Origin: Blepharisma stoltei ATCC 30299
Taxonomy: Eukaryota; Protista; Ciliophora
Reading direction: 5' to 3'
Length of the DNA: 64,000 nucleotides
Assembly (NCBI GenBank): GCA_965603825.1
Contig: CBFDEM010000053.1
Span: 1,240,001 to 1,304,000 of the forward strand
The notes below the pieces were generated by a model. That model did not search any database and was not told where the DNA came from. It worked only from the letters and a program-made list of their open reading frames with translations. Shown piece by piece: positions 2,063 through 57,917 of the stretch (position 1 is the first letter of the stretch; each line of letters starts with the position of its first letter). A program made the position numbers and the translations under genes.

Positions 2063-3316
2063 ATGAAGGTCATCTTAATTTGCTGTCTTTTCTTATTTGC
2101 AGCGAGCCATGAAAGTGACTATCAGCATCTGCTTCATGGCATCTTACAAGGTGCAGAGCTCATCAGCCCATCATTTCAGTTAAATTGCAAAATATCAATT
2201 CCTCGCTTTCTCGAAGCCTACCAATTTGATGAAACTTGGGAATCAATCATTTCTGATGCAATTTTATATTCAGAATACTGCAAGTTCACCTCAGCAAAAG
2301 AAACCTTGCTGCAATTTAAATCTTCGGACTCACTCATGACAAAGTCATTTTCCAAGCTCAGCGAGGCCATTGCAAGTGACAGAGTTGTCCCATCAAGCAA
2401 TCTTAATCAATATGGTGTCTCAATCGGAGCTTTTCTTAAGCCTTATTTTGCCTTAGCATCTCCCACTGTCCTTGACTTCGAGTTCTCTGGAGATATTTCA
2501 GCTCTGACATCAGGAAAATATCCAACAGCGATTTTCCATGGTCTGGGAGACTGTTGCTACTACCCTGGGGATATTGAGTTCACTGATTACATTCGTAAAA
2601 ACGTTGGAACTTATACACGATGTGTCGAAATTGGTGACGGGTCTGCTACCAGTTGGCTTGAAGCCTTCCAATCTCAAGCTAATGAAGGATGCGAAAAGAT
2701 CAGAGCTGACCCAGAATTTGCCAATGGACTAAATGTGATTGGGCTATCTCAAGGAGGGTTAATAGCAAGATCTATTGCTGAAGAATGTGGAATGCCTGTG
2801 CATGTCCTCGTTACTATGGGCGGGCCACATATGGGAGTTGCAGCAATGCCGAACTGTTTTAATGGATTTTACTGCGACATTGTCAACGCTGCCATTGATA
2901 AAGACGTATATAGCAGCTTCTGCCAAAACCACCTCGGCCCTCCTGGCTACTTCAAAGATCCATATAGATACGACGCTTATCTTAAAAACAGCAACTTTTT
3001 AGCAACCCTTAACAATGAAAAATCACTCAACACCACCTATGTAACAGGGATGCAGAATTTAGATAATTTAGTCCTTGTTAAATTTACAGAAGATACTATT
3101 GTAGACCCACCAGACAGCGAATGGTTCGGATACTTTGAAAATGATAGTCATCATCTTGTACCAATGAACCAAACTACTGATTTTCACCAAAATTTAATTG
3201 GCTTACAACAACTTTACGCTCAAGAAAAGATGCATTTTATCCCTATCCAAGGTAACCATTTACAATTTACTGAAGCCGAGTTCACTCAGCTGGTGTTGCC
3301 TTATCTTTTACAATAA
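2063..3316 (+). CDS. PPT1: Palmitoyl-protein thioesterase 1-like, with signal peptide and N-terminal extension
   Basis: Hydrophobic N-terminus; IFHGLGDCC, GLSQGG (catalytic Ser), GGPHMGV, DTIVDPPDSEWFG, GNHLQF; ends TAA. Confidence 0.9.
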   Translation: MKVILICCLFLFAASHESDYQHLLHGILQGAELISPSFQLNCKISIPRFLEAYQFDETWESIISDAILYSEYCKFTSAKETLLQFKSSDSLMTKSFSKLSEAIASDRVVPSSNLNQYGVSIGAFLKPYFALASPTVLDFEFSGDISALTSGKYPTAIFHGLGDCCYYPGDIEFTDYIRKNVGTYTRCVEIGDGSATSWLEAFQSQANEGCEKIRADPEFANGLNVIGLSQGGLIARSIAEECGMPVHVLVTMGGPHMGVAAMPNCFNGFYCDIVNAAIDKDVYSSFCQNHLGPPGYFKDPYRYDAYLKNSNFLATLNNEKSLNTTYVTGMQNLDNLVLVKFTEDTIVDPPDSEWFGYFENDSHHLVPMNQTTDFHQNLIGLQQLYAQEKMHFIPIQGNHLQFTEAEFTQLVLPYLLQ

Positions 3317-3360
3317 TTTAATGGCAATAACCTTAAATTGGAAAAATAAATTAGCATAAA

Positions 3361-4371
3361 TTAAACTGCAGTGGCTTCGACCACGAAAAGTCTTTTCACA
3401 GGCTGGTAGTTTGTGATTCTGAACCCGCTTCTATCAAAAATTTGTTCAAGTTCTTGCCTTGTTCTTATTCTCCCTTCACTTACGATCAGATCATAAATGT
3501 CTAACTGAGACACAAGTTTGTAGGTGCTTTGGTCATGTCTGTCAAGAATATGGTCAGTTAAAAATAATTTATTGCCGTGTTCTATTGCCCTTCTGCAGTT
3601 CTTTAGGATATTTTCTAGCTGCTGGTTATTATACTCAGAAATCGCGCATTTAAGGATCACAGTGTCAAACCCTTCAGGTACTGCATCCACGAAGTTTCCT
3701 GATGCAACTTTAATCCTTTCCCCATGTCCATAATCAGAAATATTTTTTTCTACAAAATTCCTGAATACCGTCTGCTCATAAATTGTCCCAGTAAAATCTC
3801 TATAAACTTTAGCCAATTCATTTAGCAAAGTCCCGTCTCTTCCTCCAACTTCAATGACTTTTCTGGAATTTCTTAAATCTATATGTGGAGCTATGTCATT
3901 TGCAACTATTTTTATAAACATCTTATAGGTTGCTATATACTCTTCTAATAATTCTGGTCTTTGGCTTATGAAATCGTTGAATGTTTGGTTAAATTTAAGT
4001 TCTGGTGCTGTTTTTTCAGATTTTAAAACTTCAGGAAATACACTGTAAAATTCATAACGATATGGATTTAATGATAATTTTACGAATTTAGCAAATTGTT
4101 CGTTCAGGAGGCACTCTGTGATGCTTGTATTGGAAAATTGACGGGTTTGTTCATTATAAGCGAAGAGCTTTTCAGTTTCAAGGGCAAGAAGGACACGCTC
4201 CAATTTATCTGGGACTGATGATGATTCTGATGCAAGCTCTTCTGCTGTTTTAGGACCTGAAGCTAAAAGTCTGGGAATGTTTAAATCGACGACAGAGTAT
4301 AAAAGAATACCAAGCTGAGGACCAAATAGCATTTTTTGAATCTTTGCTTCTCTATCGGAATATTCTTGCAT
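3361..4371 (-). CDS. SAM-dependent O-methyltransferase family 2 protein (dimerisation + methyltransferase domains), divergent motifs
   Basis: GPKTAEELA winged-helix region, VIEVGGRDG SAM-binding loop, GNFVDAVPEGFD, GRIRTRQEL..IFDRSGF; ends TAA. Confidence 0.85.
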   Translation of the reverse strand: MQEYSDREAKIQKMLFGPQLGILLYSVVDLNIPRLLASGPKTAEELASESSSVPDKLERVLLALETEKLFAYNEQTRQFSNTSITECLLNEQFAKFVKLSLNPYRYEFYSVFPEVLKSEKTAPELKFNQTFNDFISQRPELLEEYIATYKMFIKIVANDIAPHIDLRNSRKVIEVGGRDGTLLNELAKVYRDFTGTIYEQTVFRNFVEKNISDYGHGERIKVASGNFVDAVPEGFDTVILKCAISEYNNQQLENILKNCRRAIEHGNKLFLTDHILDRHDQSTYKLVSQLDIYDLIVSEGRIRTRQELEQIFDRSGFRITNYQPVKRLFVVEATAV

Positions 4372-52645: not shown

Positions 52646-54014
52646 TTAATTAGGCTCTGTGACAGTTAAAGCAAACTCTTTTTCTTCTATAATAGGTTTC
52701 CATGGTGAGACTTCTTGGAATTTCCAATTAATTACAAAAGAAACACCTGACAAGCAGGTTAAAATCCAAAACATTGCTTGATAGCCTAAAGAAGGCACGA
52801 TATAAAGTTGAGTTAAAAATATCACAATCGTCGCAAAGCCAAAACTGAAAAAAAATATTCCAAAAATTTTGGCTCCCATACTAAATATCCATTACTTTCT
52901 ACCAAAAAGCTTCGCCATAACAGTAGGGAATAAGGAAAAATGGCCGCCTTCACACATCATAATTACACAAATTCAGATAAAAAACAATGCTTCAACTGAG
53001 CTTATATAATATAGTGTTGCCATCATAATGATTTGGATTACTAACAAAATTCCATATGCTAACCTAAAGTTTGATCTGTCCATCAAATATGCTCATATAT
53101 ATCGAAAACTTCCATTGAATACTGAACTAACTGACCCTACAATTGACAAAAAATCGTCATCACCGATTTTTTCATTTCCAAAACTTTTATATGATCCCGC
53201 TACATAATATCCCGAAGCTAGATCTAAAATTACCGGTAGAGCATATGCTTGCTATAAAAAGCATTATAAATTTGTGTGACTTTATTCCTTCTTTTACATT
53301 TGGACATGAATAATCGTCCTTTTCAGCCTTATTTTGTTTTATTATAGGTGCAAGCAATAAAATTCCAACGACGCTCATAATTAAATAGCAAAGAGAAAGT
53401 CACCTGAGCATAGCAGGAACTCCATCAGCAATGCTGCTATCAAAATAATGGTTTGTTGTTCCATCATCTTTAACTTTTATATTAGCTTTTTCGTTGTTTG
53501 GGTTTACTATTTTCGTAGCAATTTGATTATAAATTGCTGCTCCCAACCCAAAACCTCCAACTATGACTCCACTTACCTTTCCTTTTGAATTAGGGAAGTG
53601 ACTCCAGCCTATAATTAGAGGAGTTGTATATGACAACCCGCAGCCTAGGCCAAACATAAACCCATATGTAATGCTGAAGCTTACTAAGTCTTTGCAAAAT
53701 GAGCTTGCAAATATCCCGAGTACCAAAAGAGAATTTCCAATTATTATAGATCTGAATAATATTTACATATAAGGAGAATATTGTTGGGCAATTCAGGAGC
53801 CAAGGAAATTTGTCATAGTGCTTGCAGTCACTTGTAAAGTAAATAAAATATTGATGTCCTGGATGGTAACAGAATGTTCGTGCTCCCTTAAATAAGATGC
53901 TATGTATCCACTAATATTCCCAGTAATATATAAAGTCCCTAACACCTACCTAGCATCTACCAAGTGAATAAGAAAAGACCCTAGTAAAGATAATATTTTC
54001 CTTTTTCTATCCAT
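52646..54014 (-). CDS. MFS transporter, oxalate:formate antiporter-like (435 aa, four introns)
   Basis: YGFMFGLGCGLSY..WSHFPNSKGKVSG..GFGLG, NGSFRYI(W)AYLMDR, GGHFSLFP. Needs four introns and four TGA = Trp; spliced length 1308 nt is divisible by 3. Confidence 0.88.
52881..52895 (-). other. 15-nt spliceosomal intron
   Basis: GTAATGGATATTTAG; contains an in-frame TAA. Confidence 0.88.
53218..53233 (-). other. 16-nt spliceosomal intron
   Basis: GTAATTTTAGATCTAG; required frame change in the MFS gene. Confidence 0.88.
53752..53766 (-). other. 15-nt spliceosomal intron
   Basis: GTAAATATTATTCAG; contains an in-frame TAA. Confidence 0.88.
53946..53960 (-). other. 15-nt spliceosomal intron
   Basis: GTAGATGCTAGGTAG; in-frame terminal TAG; splicing gives IHL-VLGT. 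Confidence 0.85.
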
Positions 54015-54066
54015 CTTTTTAATATATAAAAAATCATACTTATTTATTCAACAGTGAAATTTATTT

Positions 54067-56118
54067 TTAGAATCCTGGATGCACTCTTAAAAATATAGGG
54101 AATCTTGGCTTTCCTTTATTGCTGACTTCTTGGTATTTATAAGTAACTCTTGATCCGATTTTTGGAGGCCTTCTTCTTTGTTCATCAGTAAACCCTGATC
54201 CGATTTTGAAATTTACCCCATTGTCTCCTACAACTTCTAAGGCTCCCATAAGATTAGCCAGTCTTCCTGTGCCTTTTTGATGGCCTGTAACAGTGGCTTC
54301 TGCATCAAAAAATGTTTTTACTTTGAGTAGTGTATCAGATCTTCTATGCTCATACATGCTACCAGGTTTTCTGAGCATTAAACCTTCACCTCCAAGGTCT
54401 TGGACTCGTTGTAGCTCTCTTTCCATATGTTCTTTGCTTTCACACCTATAATGCTCATGTGCTCTCACATATGGTGATTGCAATTTCGCAGCTAAGTTGT
54501 GAAGATAGTTCAATCTGTCTTCGAATGGTGCTTTTAAAGATGGGGCATCAAACAGGACATATACAATTTTTGCCCACTCATTCATATCATATTTTTGAGC
54601 ATCTTGCCTTTTAATTATTCCGACACATTCTGAAAACTGCTTTCGGCCCATTCACAGCTCTCCATCTAAGCTGACAGTTTTTGGTAATTTTTCAATAAAA
54701 AACTTGGGTGCAAAAAATGGGTTTCCGTTTCTTGACTGAAGACGGCTACCATTCCAATAGCATCTAACACCATCTAGTTTTTCACTCATAATTCAGCCTG
54801 TTGGATCTATACTATCATCCCAGGTTTGGGCTAATAAAACTTGAATTTTATCTGCAGGCTTTCCTTTTCCTCTTTCTATTACATATCTTGGATCTATTCT
54901 TATAAGGTCGTTTCCTTCGATTTTTCTCTGTTTTACTTTTTCTTCTTCATCATATGGCAGAATAGCACTTCCTGTAAGCGCTGGGACTCACTCACCATTT
55001 TGAATACTCCCAAGGATTTTTTGACGTATTTTTTTAGGAATTCCTAATTCTTGGAGATCATTCTCGTTCATCGTCAAAACTTGATCAGGATGAATCCCTC
55101 TTGTTTCAAAATTCAGCACATACCTTCCTAAATTAATAGAATCCATCATGCTTTGTATGGTTGTATAGGGGTTAATTTTTTCTCTGCTCCTTTTCACTGG
55201 GAGATTTTCTAACATTTGTGTCTGATTTAAGTCCATTTCATTTTCCTCGTCAGTTTTTTCTAAAATTTCTTCTTCAGTTTCTGCTAACACCTCGGTATGC
55301 TGACTTGTATTGAGGTCTTCGTCTTTTATATCAGGTTTTTCAAAGATAAAACTGGTTAAAACACCGTTTTCTTCGTCTTCTACTATTTGATGCTGATGCA
55401 TAGAAGATAAAAGAAGGGCTTGTGAGACAGGAAAGGCATGATCGTCTATTTCTACTGCTCCACTTCTACGTAAAAAGCCAGGCTGCGATTTAGGAGCGTC
55501 AAGGCTATGGGTTTCTTCTTCATCTTCACTGATTTCTAGTGTGCATTGCTTATCTAATTCGCTTAAAAATCCTCCTTCTTTTTTATTGCCTTCCTCTGAG
55601 CAGATAGACATGGTTTTAATTAAATCGCTTTTGTTGAAATCAAAGGTAAACTTTGGAGAGTTTCTCTTGTACCCAGTTGCAAGCATTTTTCTAATCATTT
55701 CTTTTGCTTTAGCAAGAGCAGTTTGGTGGTCTTTATAAGTGTAAATTGAAGTTTCAGGTGGGCCGGCTCTTGACCCTTTTTCAGTTTTTACTCTTTCTTC
55801 GTGCACTTGGATTTTTATAAACTCAGGTCCTTTTTCTAAGTAATCACCAAGAAATTCATCAACCACAGCAATTTCTGGGGCTTGCTTGAATGCATATCCT
55901 TTCGATCTTTTTGAAGTTATCATATCTTTACCTTTTAGCAATGCTTTATCTATTGAATTAAATCGTTTTCATGATGTTTCTATATCTTCCTCTTTTCCAC
56001 CTGATATTTTTCCAGTTCTAATATGATTTGTTTGATTTTCATTTCTAATTTCCCAAAATTTCCCATCAGAGTTTTGCATGTAAATTTTTGAGTTAATTCC
56101 GAAATCAATAGAATCCAT
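54067..56118 (-). CDS. WGR-WGR-SAM fused to a minimal ATP-dependent DNA ligase (adenylation + OB domains; 683 aa)
   Basis: Single 2052-nt frame with TGAs at 55969, 54988, 54793 and 54652. Ligase motifs G(W)IMSEKLDGVRCYW, SRNG, LDGEL(W), YVLFD, GEGLMLR, LLKVK, KIGSGF, PRFP. N-terminal KFWEI..TGKI..KRSKGY; SAM-like INLGRYVLNF..MNENDLQELGI. Confidence 0.88.
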
Positions 56119-56354
56119 TTTATAAACGATTTAGGTGAGGGAAAACTTGCATATCTATATTCACAAATTTAAAGTTTTGAATACTTAAGAAGATAATAAA
56201 GTTTTATGATATAATCTAGGATTTATATATATAAAAAAGACGATTGTCTATAAAAAGTAGAGAGAATATATGACACTGTCCTATCTGTTTAGCTGAGTAG
56301 GCTGATATCATAAGGCTCACTATATTTAGTTAAAATAATTGAGCTAAATTATCT

Positions 56355-57917
56355 TTAAATTAAGCTGAAAGTCTGCACAACTGGGTATGATGAATTCTTT
56401 TCTTCTTTCTCCATGCTCAACAGCTCAATACTTGCAAGGTTTACTTTTATATCAAATACAAAATTCCTCGCCAATACATCAGAAATATCCATTTTCTGGT
56501 TGTTTTCAGACTTTGCCAAAGTCAAATGTTGAGCTTTCTGCACGCTTCCTCCTACTAATTTAGCGTTCTGTTTTTTTAGGTCTTCTTGGCTGATAATTCC
56601 TCCATCCATAAGGGTTTTCACAAGCGCAGTGTTCATTTGATTCATCTTATCTGTTTCTGCATCTTGTTTAAGTTCTAAAGTAAGCACATTCGCAGCAGTT
56701 GGCTTTCCAAAGAAGCCAACTTTATCAAATGTAAGGCTAAGTGGAGATCCTTGAAGGCTTCGTTTTATAGAGTCTAAATTATTGTTAACAAGGCTTACTG
56801 TTTGGTCAGTTGATTCTAAATTCATCAATGCAAGCGTCAAGTGGAATTTGTTAGGGGTGTTTATTCAATCGTTCTTAAAGTTACCAATTCGGCATGTGAG
56901 GATTTCTTGTTGTGCTTTAGCTATGTTTGGATCGTTCTCCATGCTCAAAGCGAAGAAATGGGTGAATTTCTTCTGTTTTTTGCCAGATCCCCACGATTTC
57001 ATAGCTTTTTGGTCAGTTTTTACTAATTTAATAAAATTCGCATACCCTTCCTTGACTTGATCCTTCGTATATCCAATAATTTCTAAAACTTTTGTGTTTT
57101 TATTGATCAAAAACTCGACGTTATTTCTCATTTTTGATTTTAAATTTTTTATATTTTGCCCTTTATTTGCTAACAAAAGAGTGATGCATGGCTGAGGCAG
57201 ATCTTTTACATTGGTTTTATAGCCTTGCCACTTATTATCCCAGTTCATCTGTAATTCAGGGTATTCTTCAATTTCAATGGTTTCTTTTTCTTCTTCTTTT
57301 TTTTCTTCCTCTTCTTTTTCATCAGCTTCTATTTGTATTGGGTTTAGATCTGATGGCTTTAGTATCATGATTAGCTTTCTCGTTTTTTGGTTAATGACGT
57401 TGTATTCTGATGGTTTTGATGCCTGTGTTTTATTGAGAAAATTAAGTATCATTTCATTAGCATTCATTACAAACTCTGGGCTATTTCCTCTGATTTCTAC
57501 AGTTAAATCTTTTATGTTCCCTTTTAAGACTGTGTGAGTTTCTGATTCAACTCTTTTTTGGTATTCAGTTCTGTCTAAGCTGCAAGCCCCAATCACAATT
57601 GTGAAATGCTGCCTATTGTTAAGCTTGTTATATAATGTGTAAGAATTCATCTGTGAATCATAAAAAATTGTCTCAATGATTGAACTTTCGATTTTTGGTT
57701 CTTCAACTACATATTTTTTAGTTAAGTCTTGCATGAGGTCTTCATAATCTTTGACGTCTAGGTTCACAATTTCTTCTTCGCCTTCTCCATCATCTTCTTC
57801 TAAAAGCATCAAATTATTTTCTTGGAATTTTGACTGTACAGGCTCCTGCAGCACAATTGGATATTTCCTATAAACTCTTTTTCCTACTGAAATCAGAACT
57901 GCAGATTCCTCAGCCAT
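56355..57917 (-). CDS. ASCC1/AKAP7-like protein: KH-like domain(s) + 2H phosphoesterase (520 aa)
   Basis: FTHFFALS, KFHLTLALM and QHLTLAK (two HxT motifs); degenerate KH LLLANKGQNIKNL. TGA at 56865 joins the two ORFs. Confidence 0.75.

Follow-up and report, generated by a model that had tools for sequence, protein, structure and literature searches.

The window analyzed here is a stretch of 64,000 nucleotides from the ciliate Blepharisma stoltei ATCC 30299 (assembly GCA_965603825.1, contig CBFDEM010000053.1, forward-strand positions 1,240,001 to 1,304,000), and the gene in question occupies positions 54067 to 56118 of its minus strand. In its product, two WGR domains, an acidic linker, a SAM domain and a compact ligase follow one another in a single chain of 683 amino acids, an order that a preliminary description of this DNA had read from the letters alone and that is now backed by profiles, structures and an orthologue. 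As judged from its sequence, the protein belongs to the minimal, Lig E-like ATP-dependent DNA ligases, which consist of a nucleotidyltransferase (NT) domain and an OB_2 domain. We consider it probable that it works as a nuclear Lig E-like ligase whose DNA binding is supplied or aimed by the tandem WGR domains, with the SAM domain serving association and the acidic linker acting as a tether. A minimal ligase joined to a damage-targeting module, sometimes a WGR domain, is already known, but the N-terminal WGR-WGR-SAM arrangement of a ciliate lineage is undescribed: literature searches covering the WGR-SAM-ligase combination, ciliates and Blepharisma returned no description of the architecture. 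The parts of the gene are as follows.

54067 to 56118, minus strand: whole coding sequence, 683 sense codons plus TAA, intron-free
55882 to 56094, minus strand: WGR domain 1 (residues 9 to 79), containing one TGA codon (Trp50) and with T-G-K at the triad position
55630 to 55866, minus strand: WGR domain 2 (residues 85 to 163), from a model, structural matches and a family profile
55204 to 55629, minus strand: acidic linker (residues 164 to 305; 142 residues), net charge −27
55177 to 55200, minus strand: basic P-x-K-R-x-R motif (residues 307 to 314), conserved in the family alignment (A1)
54997 to 55173, minus strand: SAM domain (residues 316 to 374), from Pfam and a fold match
54319 to 54876, minus strand: nucleotidyltransferase (adenylation) domain (residues ∼415 to 600), Pfam PF01068, aligned to 6gdr and 4d05
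54082 to 54276, minus strand: Lig E-type OB-fold domain (residues 615 to 679), Pfam PF14743, aligned to 6gdr

The ligase core is identified by domain profiles, catalytic motifs and solved relatives. The Pfam scan was run on the five pieces of the protein that lie between the TGA codons, and the last piece matched DNA_ligase_OB_2 (PF14743) at 97.1 bits (cut-off, 28) and, taken alone, the C-terminal part of DNA_ligase_A_M (PF01068) at 36 bits (cut-off, 26.2); relatives that carry the latter domain whole score 39 to 54 bits. Motif I (KLDGVR, with Lys447 encoded at 54778 to 54780) and motifs III (DGEL, residue 485), IV (EGLMLR, 578), V (LLKVK, 597) and VI (PRFP, 671) are all present. The preliminary description had proposed a complete compact ligase without the DNA-binding domain and BRCT domain of the LIG1/3/4 type, and both halves of that proposal hold, since the two core domains score above their cut-offs with these motifs intact and no piece gave a Pfam match to a LIG1/3/4-type DNA-binding domain or BRCT at E values of up to 1. 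The PARP catalytic domain (PF00644) is also absent from all pieces in the Pfam scan. Among solved proteins, the bacterial Lig E enzymes 6gdr (3e-39) and 4d05 (3e-38) match best, and the Chlorella virus ligase comes next; the core is 40 to 50% identical to Lig E DNA ligases crystallized on nicked DNA. Lig E in the strict, bacterial sense combines a periplasmic signal peptide with an absence of accessory domains; the Blepharisma protein falls outside this definition, its N terminus being a folded WGR domain.

The open reading frame starts with an ATG at 56116 to 56118, preceded by an in-frame stop, and ends with a TAA at 54067 to 54069. TAA and TAG together make up 4.5% of the trinucleotides in the window, so that the chance of 683 codons free of both is ∼2e-14, and TGA occurs in frame four times against the ∼15 occurrences expected by chance. 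The single 683-residue frame, with every motif quoted in the preliminary description, was confirmed on the minus strand. Its TGA codons are as follows.

55969 to 55971, minus strand: codon 50, Trp here, GAG in the orthologue
54988 to 54990, minus strand: codon 377, Trp, also TGA in the orthologue, Trp in most relatives
54793 to 54795, minus strand: codon 442, Trp directly N-terminal of motif I, TGG in the orthologue
54652 to 54654, minus strand: codon 489, the Trp of DGELW in motif III, TGG in the orthologue

The orthologue, which has 674 codons and is 76% identical, lies on a 25-kb contig (L003) from an independent run. Codon 455 is the reverse of codons 442 and 489, being TGG in the window gene and TGA in the orthologue. 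Because TGA and TGG interchange between the two genes at conserved Trp positions, TGA reads as Trp, and this codon comparison indicates that the four TGAs belong to the organism's ordinary code and that the gene is neither broken nor, as the preliminary description had put it, hidden by four TGA codons. The ratio of nonsynonymous to synonymous substitution (dN/dS) against the orthologue is 0.26 for WGR domain 1, 0.16 for WGR domain 2, 0.17 for the SAM domain and 0.10 for the segment preceding the ligase; in the linker and the ligase core, synonymous sites are saturated, and the proportion of nonsynonymous differences (pN) is 0.21 and 0.07, respectively. Every segment in which dN/dS can be estimated is under purifying selection.

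Transcript data were available as assembled contigs from four runs (X1 to X4) of one study, which were placed on positions 53500 to 56700. One 2,047-nucleotide contig of run X1 spans 54063 to 56109 with no gaps and no mismatches, one contig of run X2 spans 54109 to 56109, and contigs of runs X3 and X4 pass across 54988. The contigs of the four runs are delimited by genes and cross all four TGA codons without a gap, and the intergenic bin at 56175 to 56281 has no contig in any of the four runs. The preliminary description had named separate transcripts on either side of the TGA at 54988 as the finding that would undo it; a single contig crosses that codon. The contigs are also gap-free over the gene, i.e., there is no intron within it. 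The runs are labeled only “RNA?”, and their nature is indicated by the neighboring gene: in the downstream gene, which resembles transporters of the major facilitator superfamily (MFS), a mini-intron of 15 nucleotides (53752 to 53766, minus strand, GT..AG) is removed in the contigs of both X1 and X2, which identifies these two runs as RNA. This spliceosomal intron, together with the size of the genome (41.5 Mb in 64 contigs) and the paralogues publicly recorded as Blepharisma stoltei, also led us to reject a bacterial or mollicute origin of the window. Within the ligase gene, the contigs of run X4 depart from the window sequence at four single bases (54496 G>A, 54523 G>A, 54934 T>C, and 55804 C>T), which are probably allelic or strain variants.

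Evidence for the WGR domains comes from family profiles and from structures. On residues 9 to 79 of the window protein, a hidden Markov model (HMM) derived only from WGR domains that Pfam recognizes reaches a score of 55.8 bits; the best of 2,000 shuffled sequences reached 8.9. When sub-alignments of the family were compared with the Pfam WGR family (PF05406) at E values of up to 0.1, WGR domain 1 was matched in 7 of 9 members and WGR domain 2 in 4 of 10, with best E values of 6.7e-9 and 9.4e-9, respectively. The profiles of the two domains align with each other (hhalign probability, 96.3%; E value, 1.7e-9), and both match residues 11 to 68 of the Bacteroides protein of PDB entry 2ra8 (E values of 4e-8 for WGR domain 1 and 1.4e-7 for WGR domain 2). 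The pattern of these residues, which we take to be a WGR domain, is nearly identical to that of the Pfam-verified WGR domain of the metagenomic ligase P0027.

In the AlphaFold model of the orthologue, where WGR domain 1 has a predicted local distance difference test score (pLDDT) of ∼88, this domain matches 2ra8_A with a Z-score of 11.0 and the WGR domains of PARP1 and PARP3 with Z-scores of 8.0 and 7.6. WGR domain 2 was modeled with AlphaFold2 from the window's own sequence (pLDDT, 93.3), and the five proteins that it matches best in structure all do so through a WGR domain (2ra8, Z 10.4; PARP1, Z 8.0, 8.0, and 7.8; PARP3, Z 7.4), the first match after them standing at Z 6.3. A Foldseek search with the whole 366-residue N-terminal model gave weak, mixed matches (triphosphate tunnel enzymes, sliding clamps, and PUR repeats) among which 2ra8 ranked 21st; an all-against-all structural aligner and the single-domain model gave a clear picture, and Foldseek with the model of WGR domain 2 ranked 2ra8 first. 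On these models and profiles, both copies are true WGR folds, of the short type found in bacteria. The first WGR-like domain of the preliminary description is well supported by the family HMM and by the match of the orthologue model to 2ra8. For the second copy, the WGR assignment stands, while the epithet “degenerate” is ill suited to a domain that is predicted to fold with such confidence. The profile and structure searches for WGR that the preliminary description had called for came out in favor of the domain for family profiles and structures and against it for direct Pfam matching of the Blepharisma sequences. Over 65 residues, the model of WGR domain 2 also resembles the N-terminal DNA-binding domain of the ligase of African swine fever virus (6imk_A), with a Z-score of 6.1 that lies within the range of common arrangements.

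Between the WGR pair and the catalytic core, the acidic linker is predicted to be disordered (pLDDT of <50 in the orthologue model), and its charge and predicted disorder agree with the linker of the preliminary description. The P-x-K-R-x-R motif that follows it is a plausible candidate for a nuclear localization signal, as judged from its residues. The SAM-like domain that had been proposed is confirmed by Pfam matches above cut-off to SAM_2 (35 bits; cut-off, 20.5; E value, 1.7e-8) and SAM_1 (31.3 bits; cut-off, 23; E value, 2.7e-7) and by its fold, which in the AlphaFold model of the N-terminal part of the orthologue matches the SAM domain of EphA1 (Z 9.5; root mean square deviation of 1.3 Å over 61 residues). 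In a comparison of the family profile with PDB, the nearest solved SAM sequences are those of ANKS6, BICC1, ANKS3, and tankyrase. The SAM domains of BICC1, ANKS3, and tankyrase form polymers, and the Blepharisma domain resembles them in sequence. A basic net charge is common to the SAM domain, the ligase core, and the two WGR domains, the latter being weakly basic (net charges of +4 and +3; isoelectric points of ∼9.2 to 9.5).

The architecture is shared with other proteins. An exhaustive HMMER search with residues 51 to 376 found 14 proteins, of which the full-length P0122, P0126, and P0127 have WGR, SAM, and ligase domains in the same order, with Pfam WGR scores of up to 34.5 bits (cut-off, 22), and a second search added further relatives with the same domains (P0146 to P0154; 626 to 670 residues). 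The arrangement is thus not unique: at least twelve relatives of 548 to 670 residues (P0122, P0126, P0127, and P0146 to P0154) share the WGR-WGR-SAM-ligase order. One member of the family is an MMETSP transcript, and another has been named “predicted DNA-binding WGR domain protein” by the Joint Genome Institute (JGI).

The genome searched, an assembly of 41.5 Mb in 64 contigs in which the window lies on contig 53, also holds the parts of this architecture separately. An unfused paralogue of 304 residues (P0009; C13:601712-602290, L002) shares 53% identity with the fused ligase over the core, ahead of which it has only a short basic tail. WGR(-WGR)-SAM copies without a ligase are found at C36:565067-565954 (P0131, L012; annotated as “SAM domain-containing protein”) and at C18:44697-45251 (L013), the former ∼5 kb from a weak match to the PARP catalytic domain (C36:559524-559910).

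The phylogeny of the core was examined by maximum likelihood in a quick search over 54 ligase cores, which gave an unrooted tree with most rows lacking an organism name. The window ligase groups with its orthologue, P0122, and P0126 in one clade with a Shimodaira-Hasegawa-like approximate likelihood ratio test (SH-aLRT) value of 97, which is nested in a clade of 24 rows (SH-aLRT, 99) that also includes a Euplotes ligase and the unfused paralogue of B. stoltei. On the opposite side of the tree are the Planctomycetaceae, Scalindua, and Thorarchaeota rows and P0027 and P0046, two ligases with a C-terminal WGR domain; the position of P0127 is not resolved. This topology fits a fusion that arose inside a Lig E-like lineage of ciliates. 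That the fusion descends directly from bacterial ligase-WGR proteins finds no support in this quick, unrooted tree. The WGR module itself may have had a bacterial source, given that WGR domain 1 of P0126 is 40% identical to the WGR domain of P0027.

Several known systems share one or more parts of this design. The bacterial Lig E enzymes (Ame-Lig, 6gdr; Psychromonas Lig, 4d05) have the same PF01068 plus PF14743 core, no DNA-binding domain, and all of the catalytic motifs, but they carry a periplasmic signal peptide and are free of accessory domains, whereas the Blepharisma ligase has an N-terminal WGR domain, a motif resembling a nuclear localization signal, and ∼410 extra N-terminal residues. 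The bacterial NT-OB_2-WGR ligases are likewise fusions of a minimal ligase with WGR. In the sequence similarity network of Williamson and Leiros, the largest bacterial NT-OB_2 group (delta-proteobacteria and Planctomycetia) is mostly WGR bearing, and one Prochlorococcus ligase has an N-terminal WGR domain; none of the bacterial WGR-bearing NT-OB_2 ligases has been characterized, and WGR is described as an RNA-binding domain in other proteins (PMC7470946). The metagenomic ligases P0027 and P0046, examples of this class, have a single C-terminal WGR domain (Pfam scores of 69 and 60 bits) and no SAM domain, in contrast to the two N-terminal WGR domains and the SAM domain of the Blepharisma ligase.

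Among eukaryotes, a parallel is offered by the Lig E of bdelloid rotifers, which according to Nicolas et al. has an extension of PBZ fingers, is radiation inducible, and raises the radiotolerance of human cells; their data set includes ciliate homologues, one of them from Stentor, and WGR or SAM domains are unmentioned (PMC10665377). AvLigE and MvLigE (bdelloid rotifers and Mortierella) thus also combine a eukaryotic Lig E core with damage-targeting accessory domains, but these are C-terminal PBZ zinc fingers and PST repeats rather than WGR and SAM domains, and while radiation induction has been shown for the rotifer enzyme, the Blepharisma ligase is known from sequence and transcript contigs. 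Human DNA ligase III (LIG3) has an analogous N-terminal nick-sensing module from the PARP toolkit, a PARP-like zinc finger, together with a DNA-binding domain, another OB subtype, and a BRCT domain. The Blepharisma ligase shows none of the three, and its candidate sensor is WGR. PARP1, PARP2, PARP3, and Bacteroides Q64V53 (2ra8) share the WGR fold, with Z-scores of 10.4 to 11.0 to 2ra8 and of 7.2 to 8.0 to PARP1 and PARP3. Unlike the PARPs, the Blepharisma ligase is without a PARP catalytic domain, its WGR domains are of the short bacterial type, and its triad retains neither Trp nor Arg.

Taken together, the architecture hints at a ligase that may find DNA damage by itself. In the account that we favor, K447 would be adenylated and 5′-phosphate/3′-OH nicks or breaks in nuclear DNA would be sealed, as the intact motifs and the well-studied family lead one to expect. 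The weakly basic WGR pair would provide the affinity for nucleic acid or damage sites that the minimal core lacks, a role assigned by analogy with the PARP-like zinc finger of LIG3 and the PBZ fingers of rotifer Lig E. Through contacts with itself or with the two WGR-SAM paralogues that lack a ligase, the SAM domain would bring enzyme molecules together. The process served is most likely the repair of nicks or breaks in general, with genome rearrangement as a possibility.

Several observations weigh against this account. First, the Pfam WGR profile (PF05406) is unmatched in the Blepharisma sequences, i.e., in the pieces of the window protein and in the 69%-identical orthologue fragment P0121; on the pieces, this is because the halves of WGR domain 1, split by a TGA codon, are too short and WGR domain 2 is too divergent. 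Second, the structural matches to PARPs (Z 7 to 8) lie within the tool's range of common arrangements, and only 2ra8 (Z 10 to 11) is clearly above it. Third, the W-G-R triad is lost, being T-G-K in the window protein and K-G-E in the orthologue; in most relatives the position reads F/Y-G-K/R, in which an aromatic and a basic residue are kept. In PARP1-DNA structures the Trp of the triad stacks on the terminal nucleotide at the break, and because the triad is lost, PARP-like recognition of DNA ends is doubtful for WGR domain 1 and should not be assumed. Fourth, the RNA evidence consists of assembled contigs, which give neither transcript ends nor levels, and these contigs end 9 nucleotides short of the ATG; Met1 is the probable start since the orthologue retains Met1 and not Met14. 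The break sensing, oligomerization, PARP independence, horizontal origin, and possible part in DNA elimination put forward in the preliminary description are weakened by three results, namely, the loss of the triad, the occurrence of at least five strong loci for a PARP catalytic domain in the same genome, and the grouping of the core, in the quick tree, with ciliate minimal ligases rather than with the named bacterial and archaeal rows.

A possible alternative, to which we give limited credence, is that the WGR-WGR-SAM head is a scaffold for protein, poly(ADP-ribose), or RNA and that the ligase is recruited in a PARP-dependent manner, by SAM-SAM pairing with the paralogues or by PARP signaling. 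The same module occurs without a ligase at two other loci (C36 and C18), the C36 copy is near a PARP catalytic match, and the PARP loci of the genome, the lost triad, and the description of WGR as an RNA-binding domain elsewhere all point in this direction. However, bacterial minimal ligases carry WGR directly, without SAM or PARP, which indicates a direct role in contacting nucleic acid, and the weakly basic charge of both WGR domains also speaks for such a role.

A more ambitious version of the self-targeting ligase seems rather unlikely. It would have the WGR pair recognize nicks or 5′-phosphorylated breaks and the SAM domain polymerize the enzyme and its ligase-less paralogues into a repair focus that bypasses PARP, in the service of both damage tolerance and programmed breaks in the developing macronucleus.

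It is unlikely, too, that the protein is a dedicated ligase for developmental genome rearrangement, closing the breaks that remain in the new macronucleus once internal eliminated sequences (IESs) have been excised, even though its host is a ciliate with DNA elimination and the fused architecture has so far been seen only in this lineage and its relatives. The transcript contigs, which carry no expression levels, give no link of the gene to conjugation, and in Paramecium the ends left by IESs are joined by Ligase IV-XRCC4. The characterized eukaryotic Lig E-like enzymes, moreover, answer radiation or desiccation damage (PMC10665377).

Still less probable is activity on RNA or RNA-DNA hybrids, in RNA repair or processing, instead of on breaks in nuclear DNA. 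Such activity might be read from the upstream neighbor with its AKAP7 2′5′ RNA ligase-like domain, whose adjacency is kept on the orthologous contig, from sub-threshold Pfam RNA_ligase matches in relatives, and from the reported RNA binding by WGR domains (PMC7470946). Against it, the identity of the core is to DNA ligases crystallized on nicked DNA, the RNA_ligase matches fall under the Pfam cut-off and reflect the shared nucleotidyltransferase fold, and gene adjacency is weak evidence in a eukaryote. An artifact, in which stops were read through in a pseudogene or across at least two neighboring genes, has next to no credibility: the standard code splits the frame into five pieces, and automatic gene callers divided the orthologue into three genes, but this reading is rejected by the TGA/TGG swaps at conserved Trp positions, by dN/dS values well under 1 in the segments where they can be estimated, and by individual transcript contigs that span all TGA codons, and relatives show the same domain order in frames that the gene callers of their collections left whole.

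How Lig E-type ligases, which have no DNA-binding domain, are targeted to their substrates in eukaryotes is largely unknown. The add-on modules differ between lineages, being PBZ fingers in rotifers, one WGR domain in some bacteria, a PARP-type zinc finger in vertebrate LIG3, and two WGR domains with a SAM domain in this ciliate lineage, which would be another separate case of a sensor module of the PARP toolkit joined to a ligase. The unfused 304-residue paralogue and the two ligase-less WGR-SAM proteins offer natural controls in the same genome. If the WGR pair binds breaks, the protein could be a compact self-targeting ligase, useful as an enzyme tool and relevant to the maintenance of ciliate genomes; otherwise, it would be one more annotation of a multidomain ligase.

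The genes on either side of the ligase gene have counterparts elsewhere. The upstream neighbor (56355 to 57917, minus strand) is a frame of 520 codons with one TGA, and its C-terminal 161 residues form an AKAP7 2′5′ RNA ligase-like (2H phosphoesterase) domain (E value, 1.3e-12); the adjacency of the ligase and AKAP7-like genes is kept on the orthologous contig L003, where the latter is at 2742 to 3521. The MFS transporter gene downstream of the ligase gene is also found on L003 and on a further contig, L009, which suggests conserved synteny.

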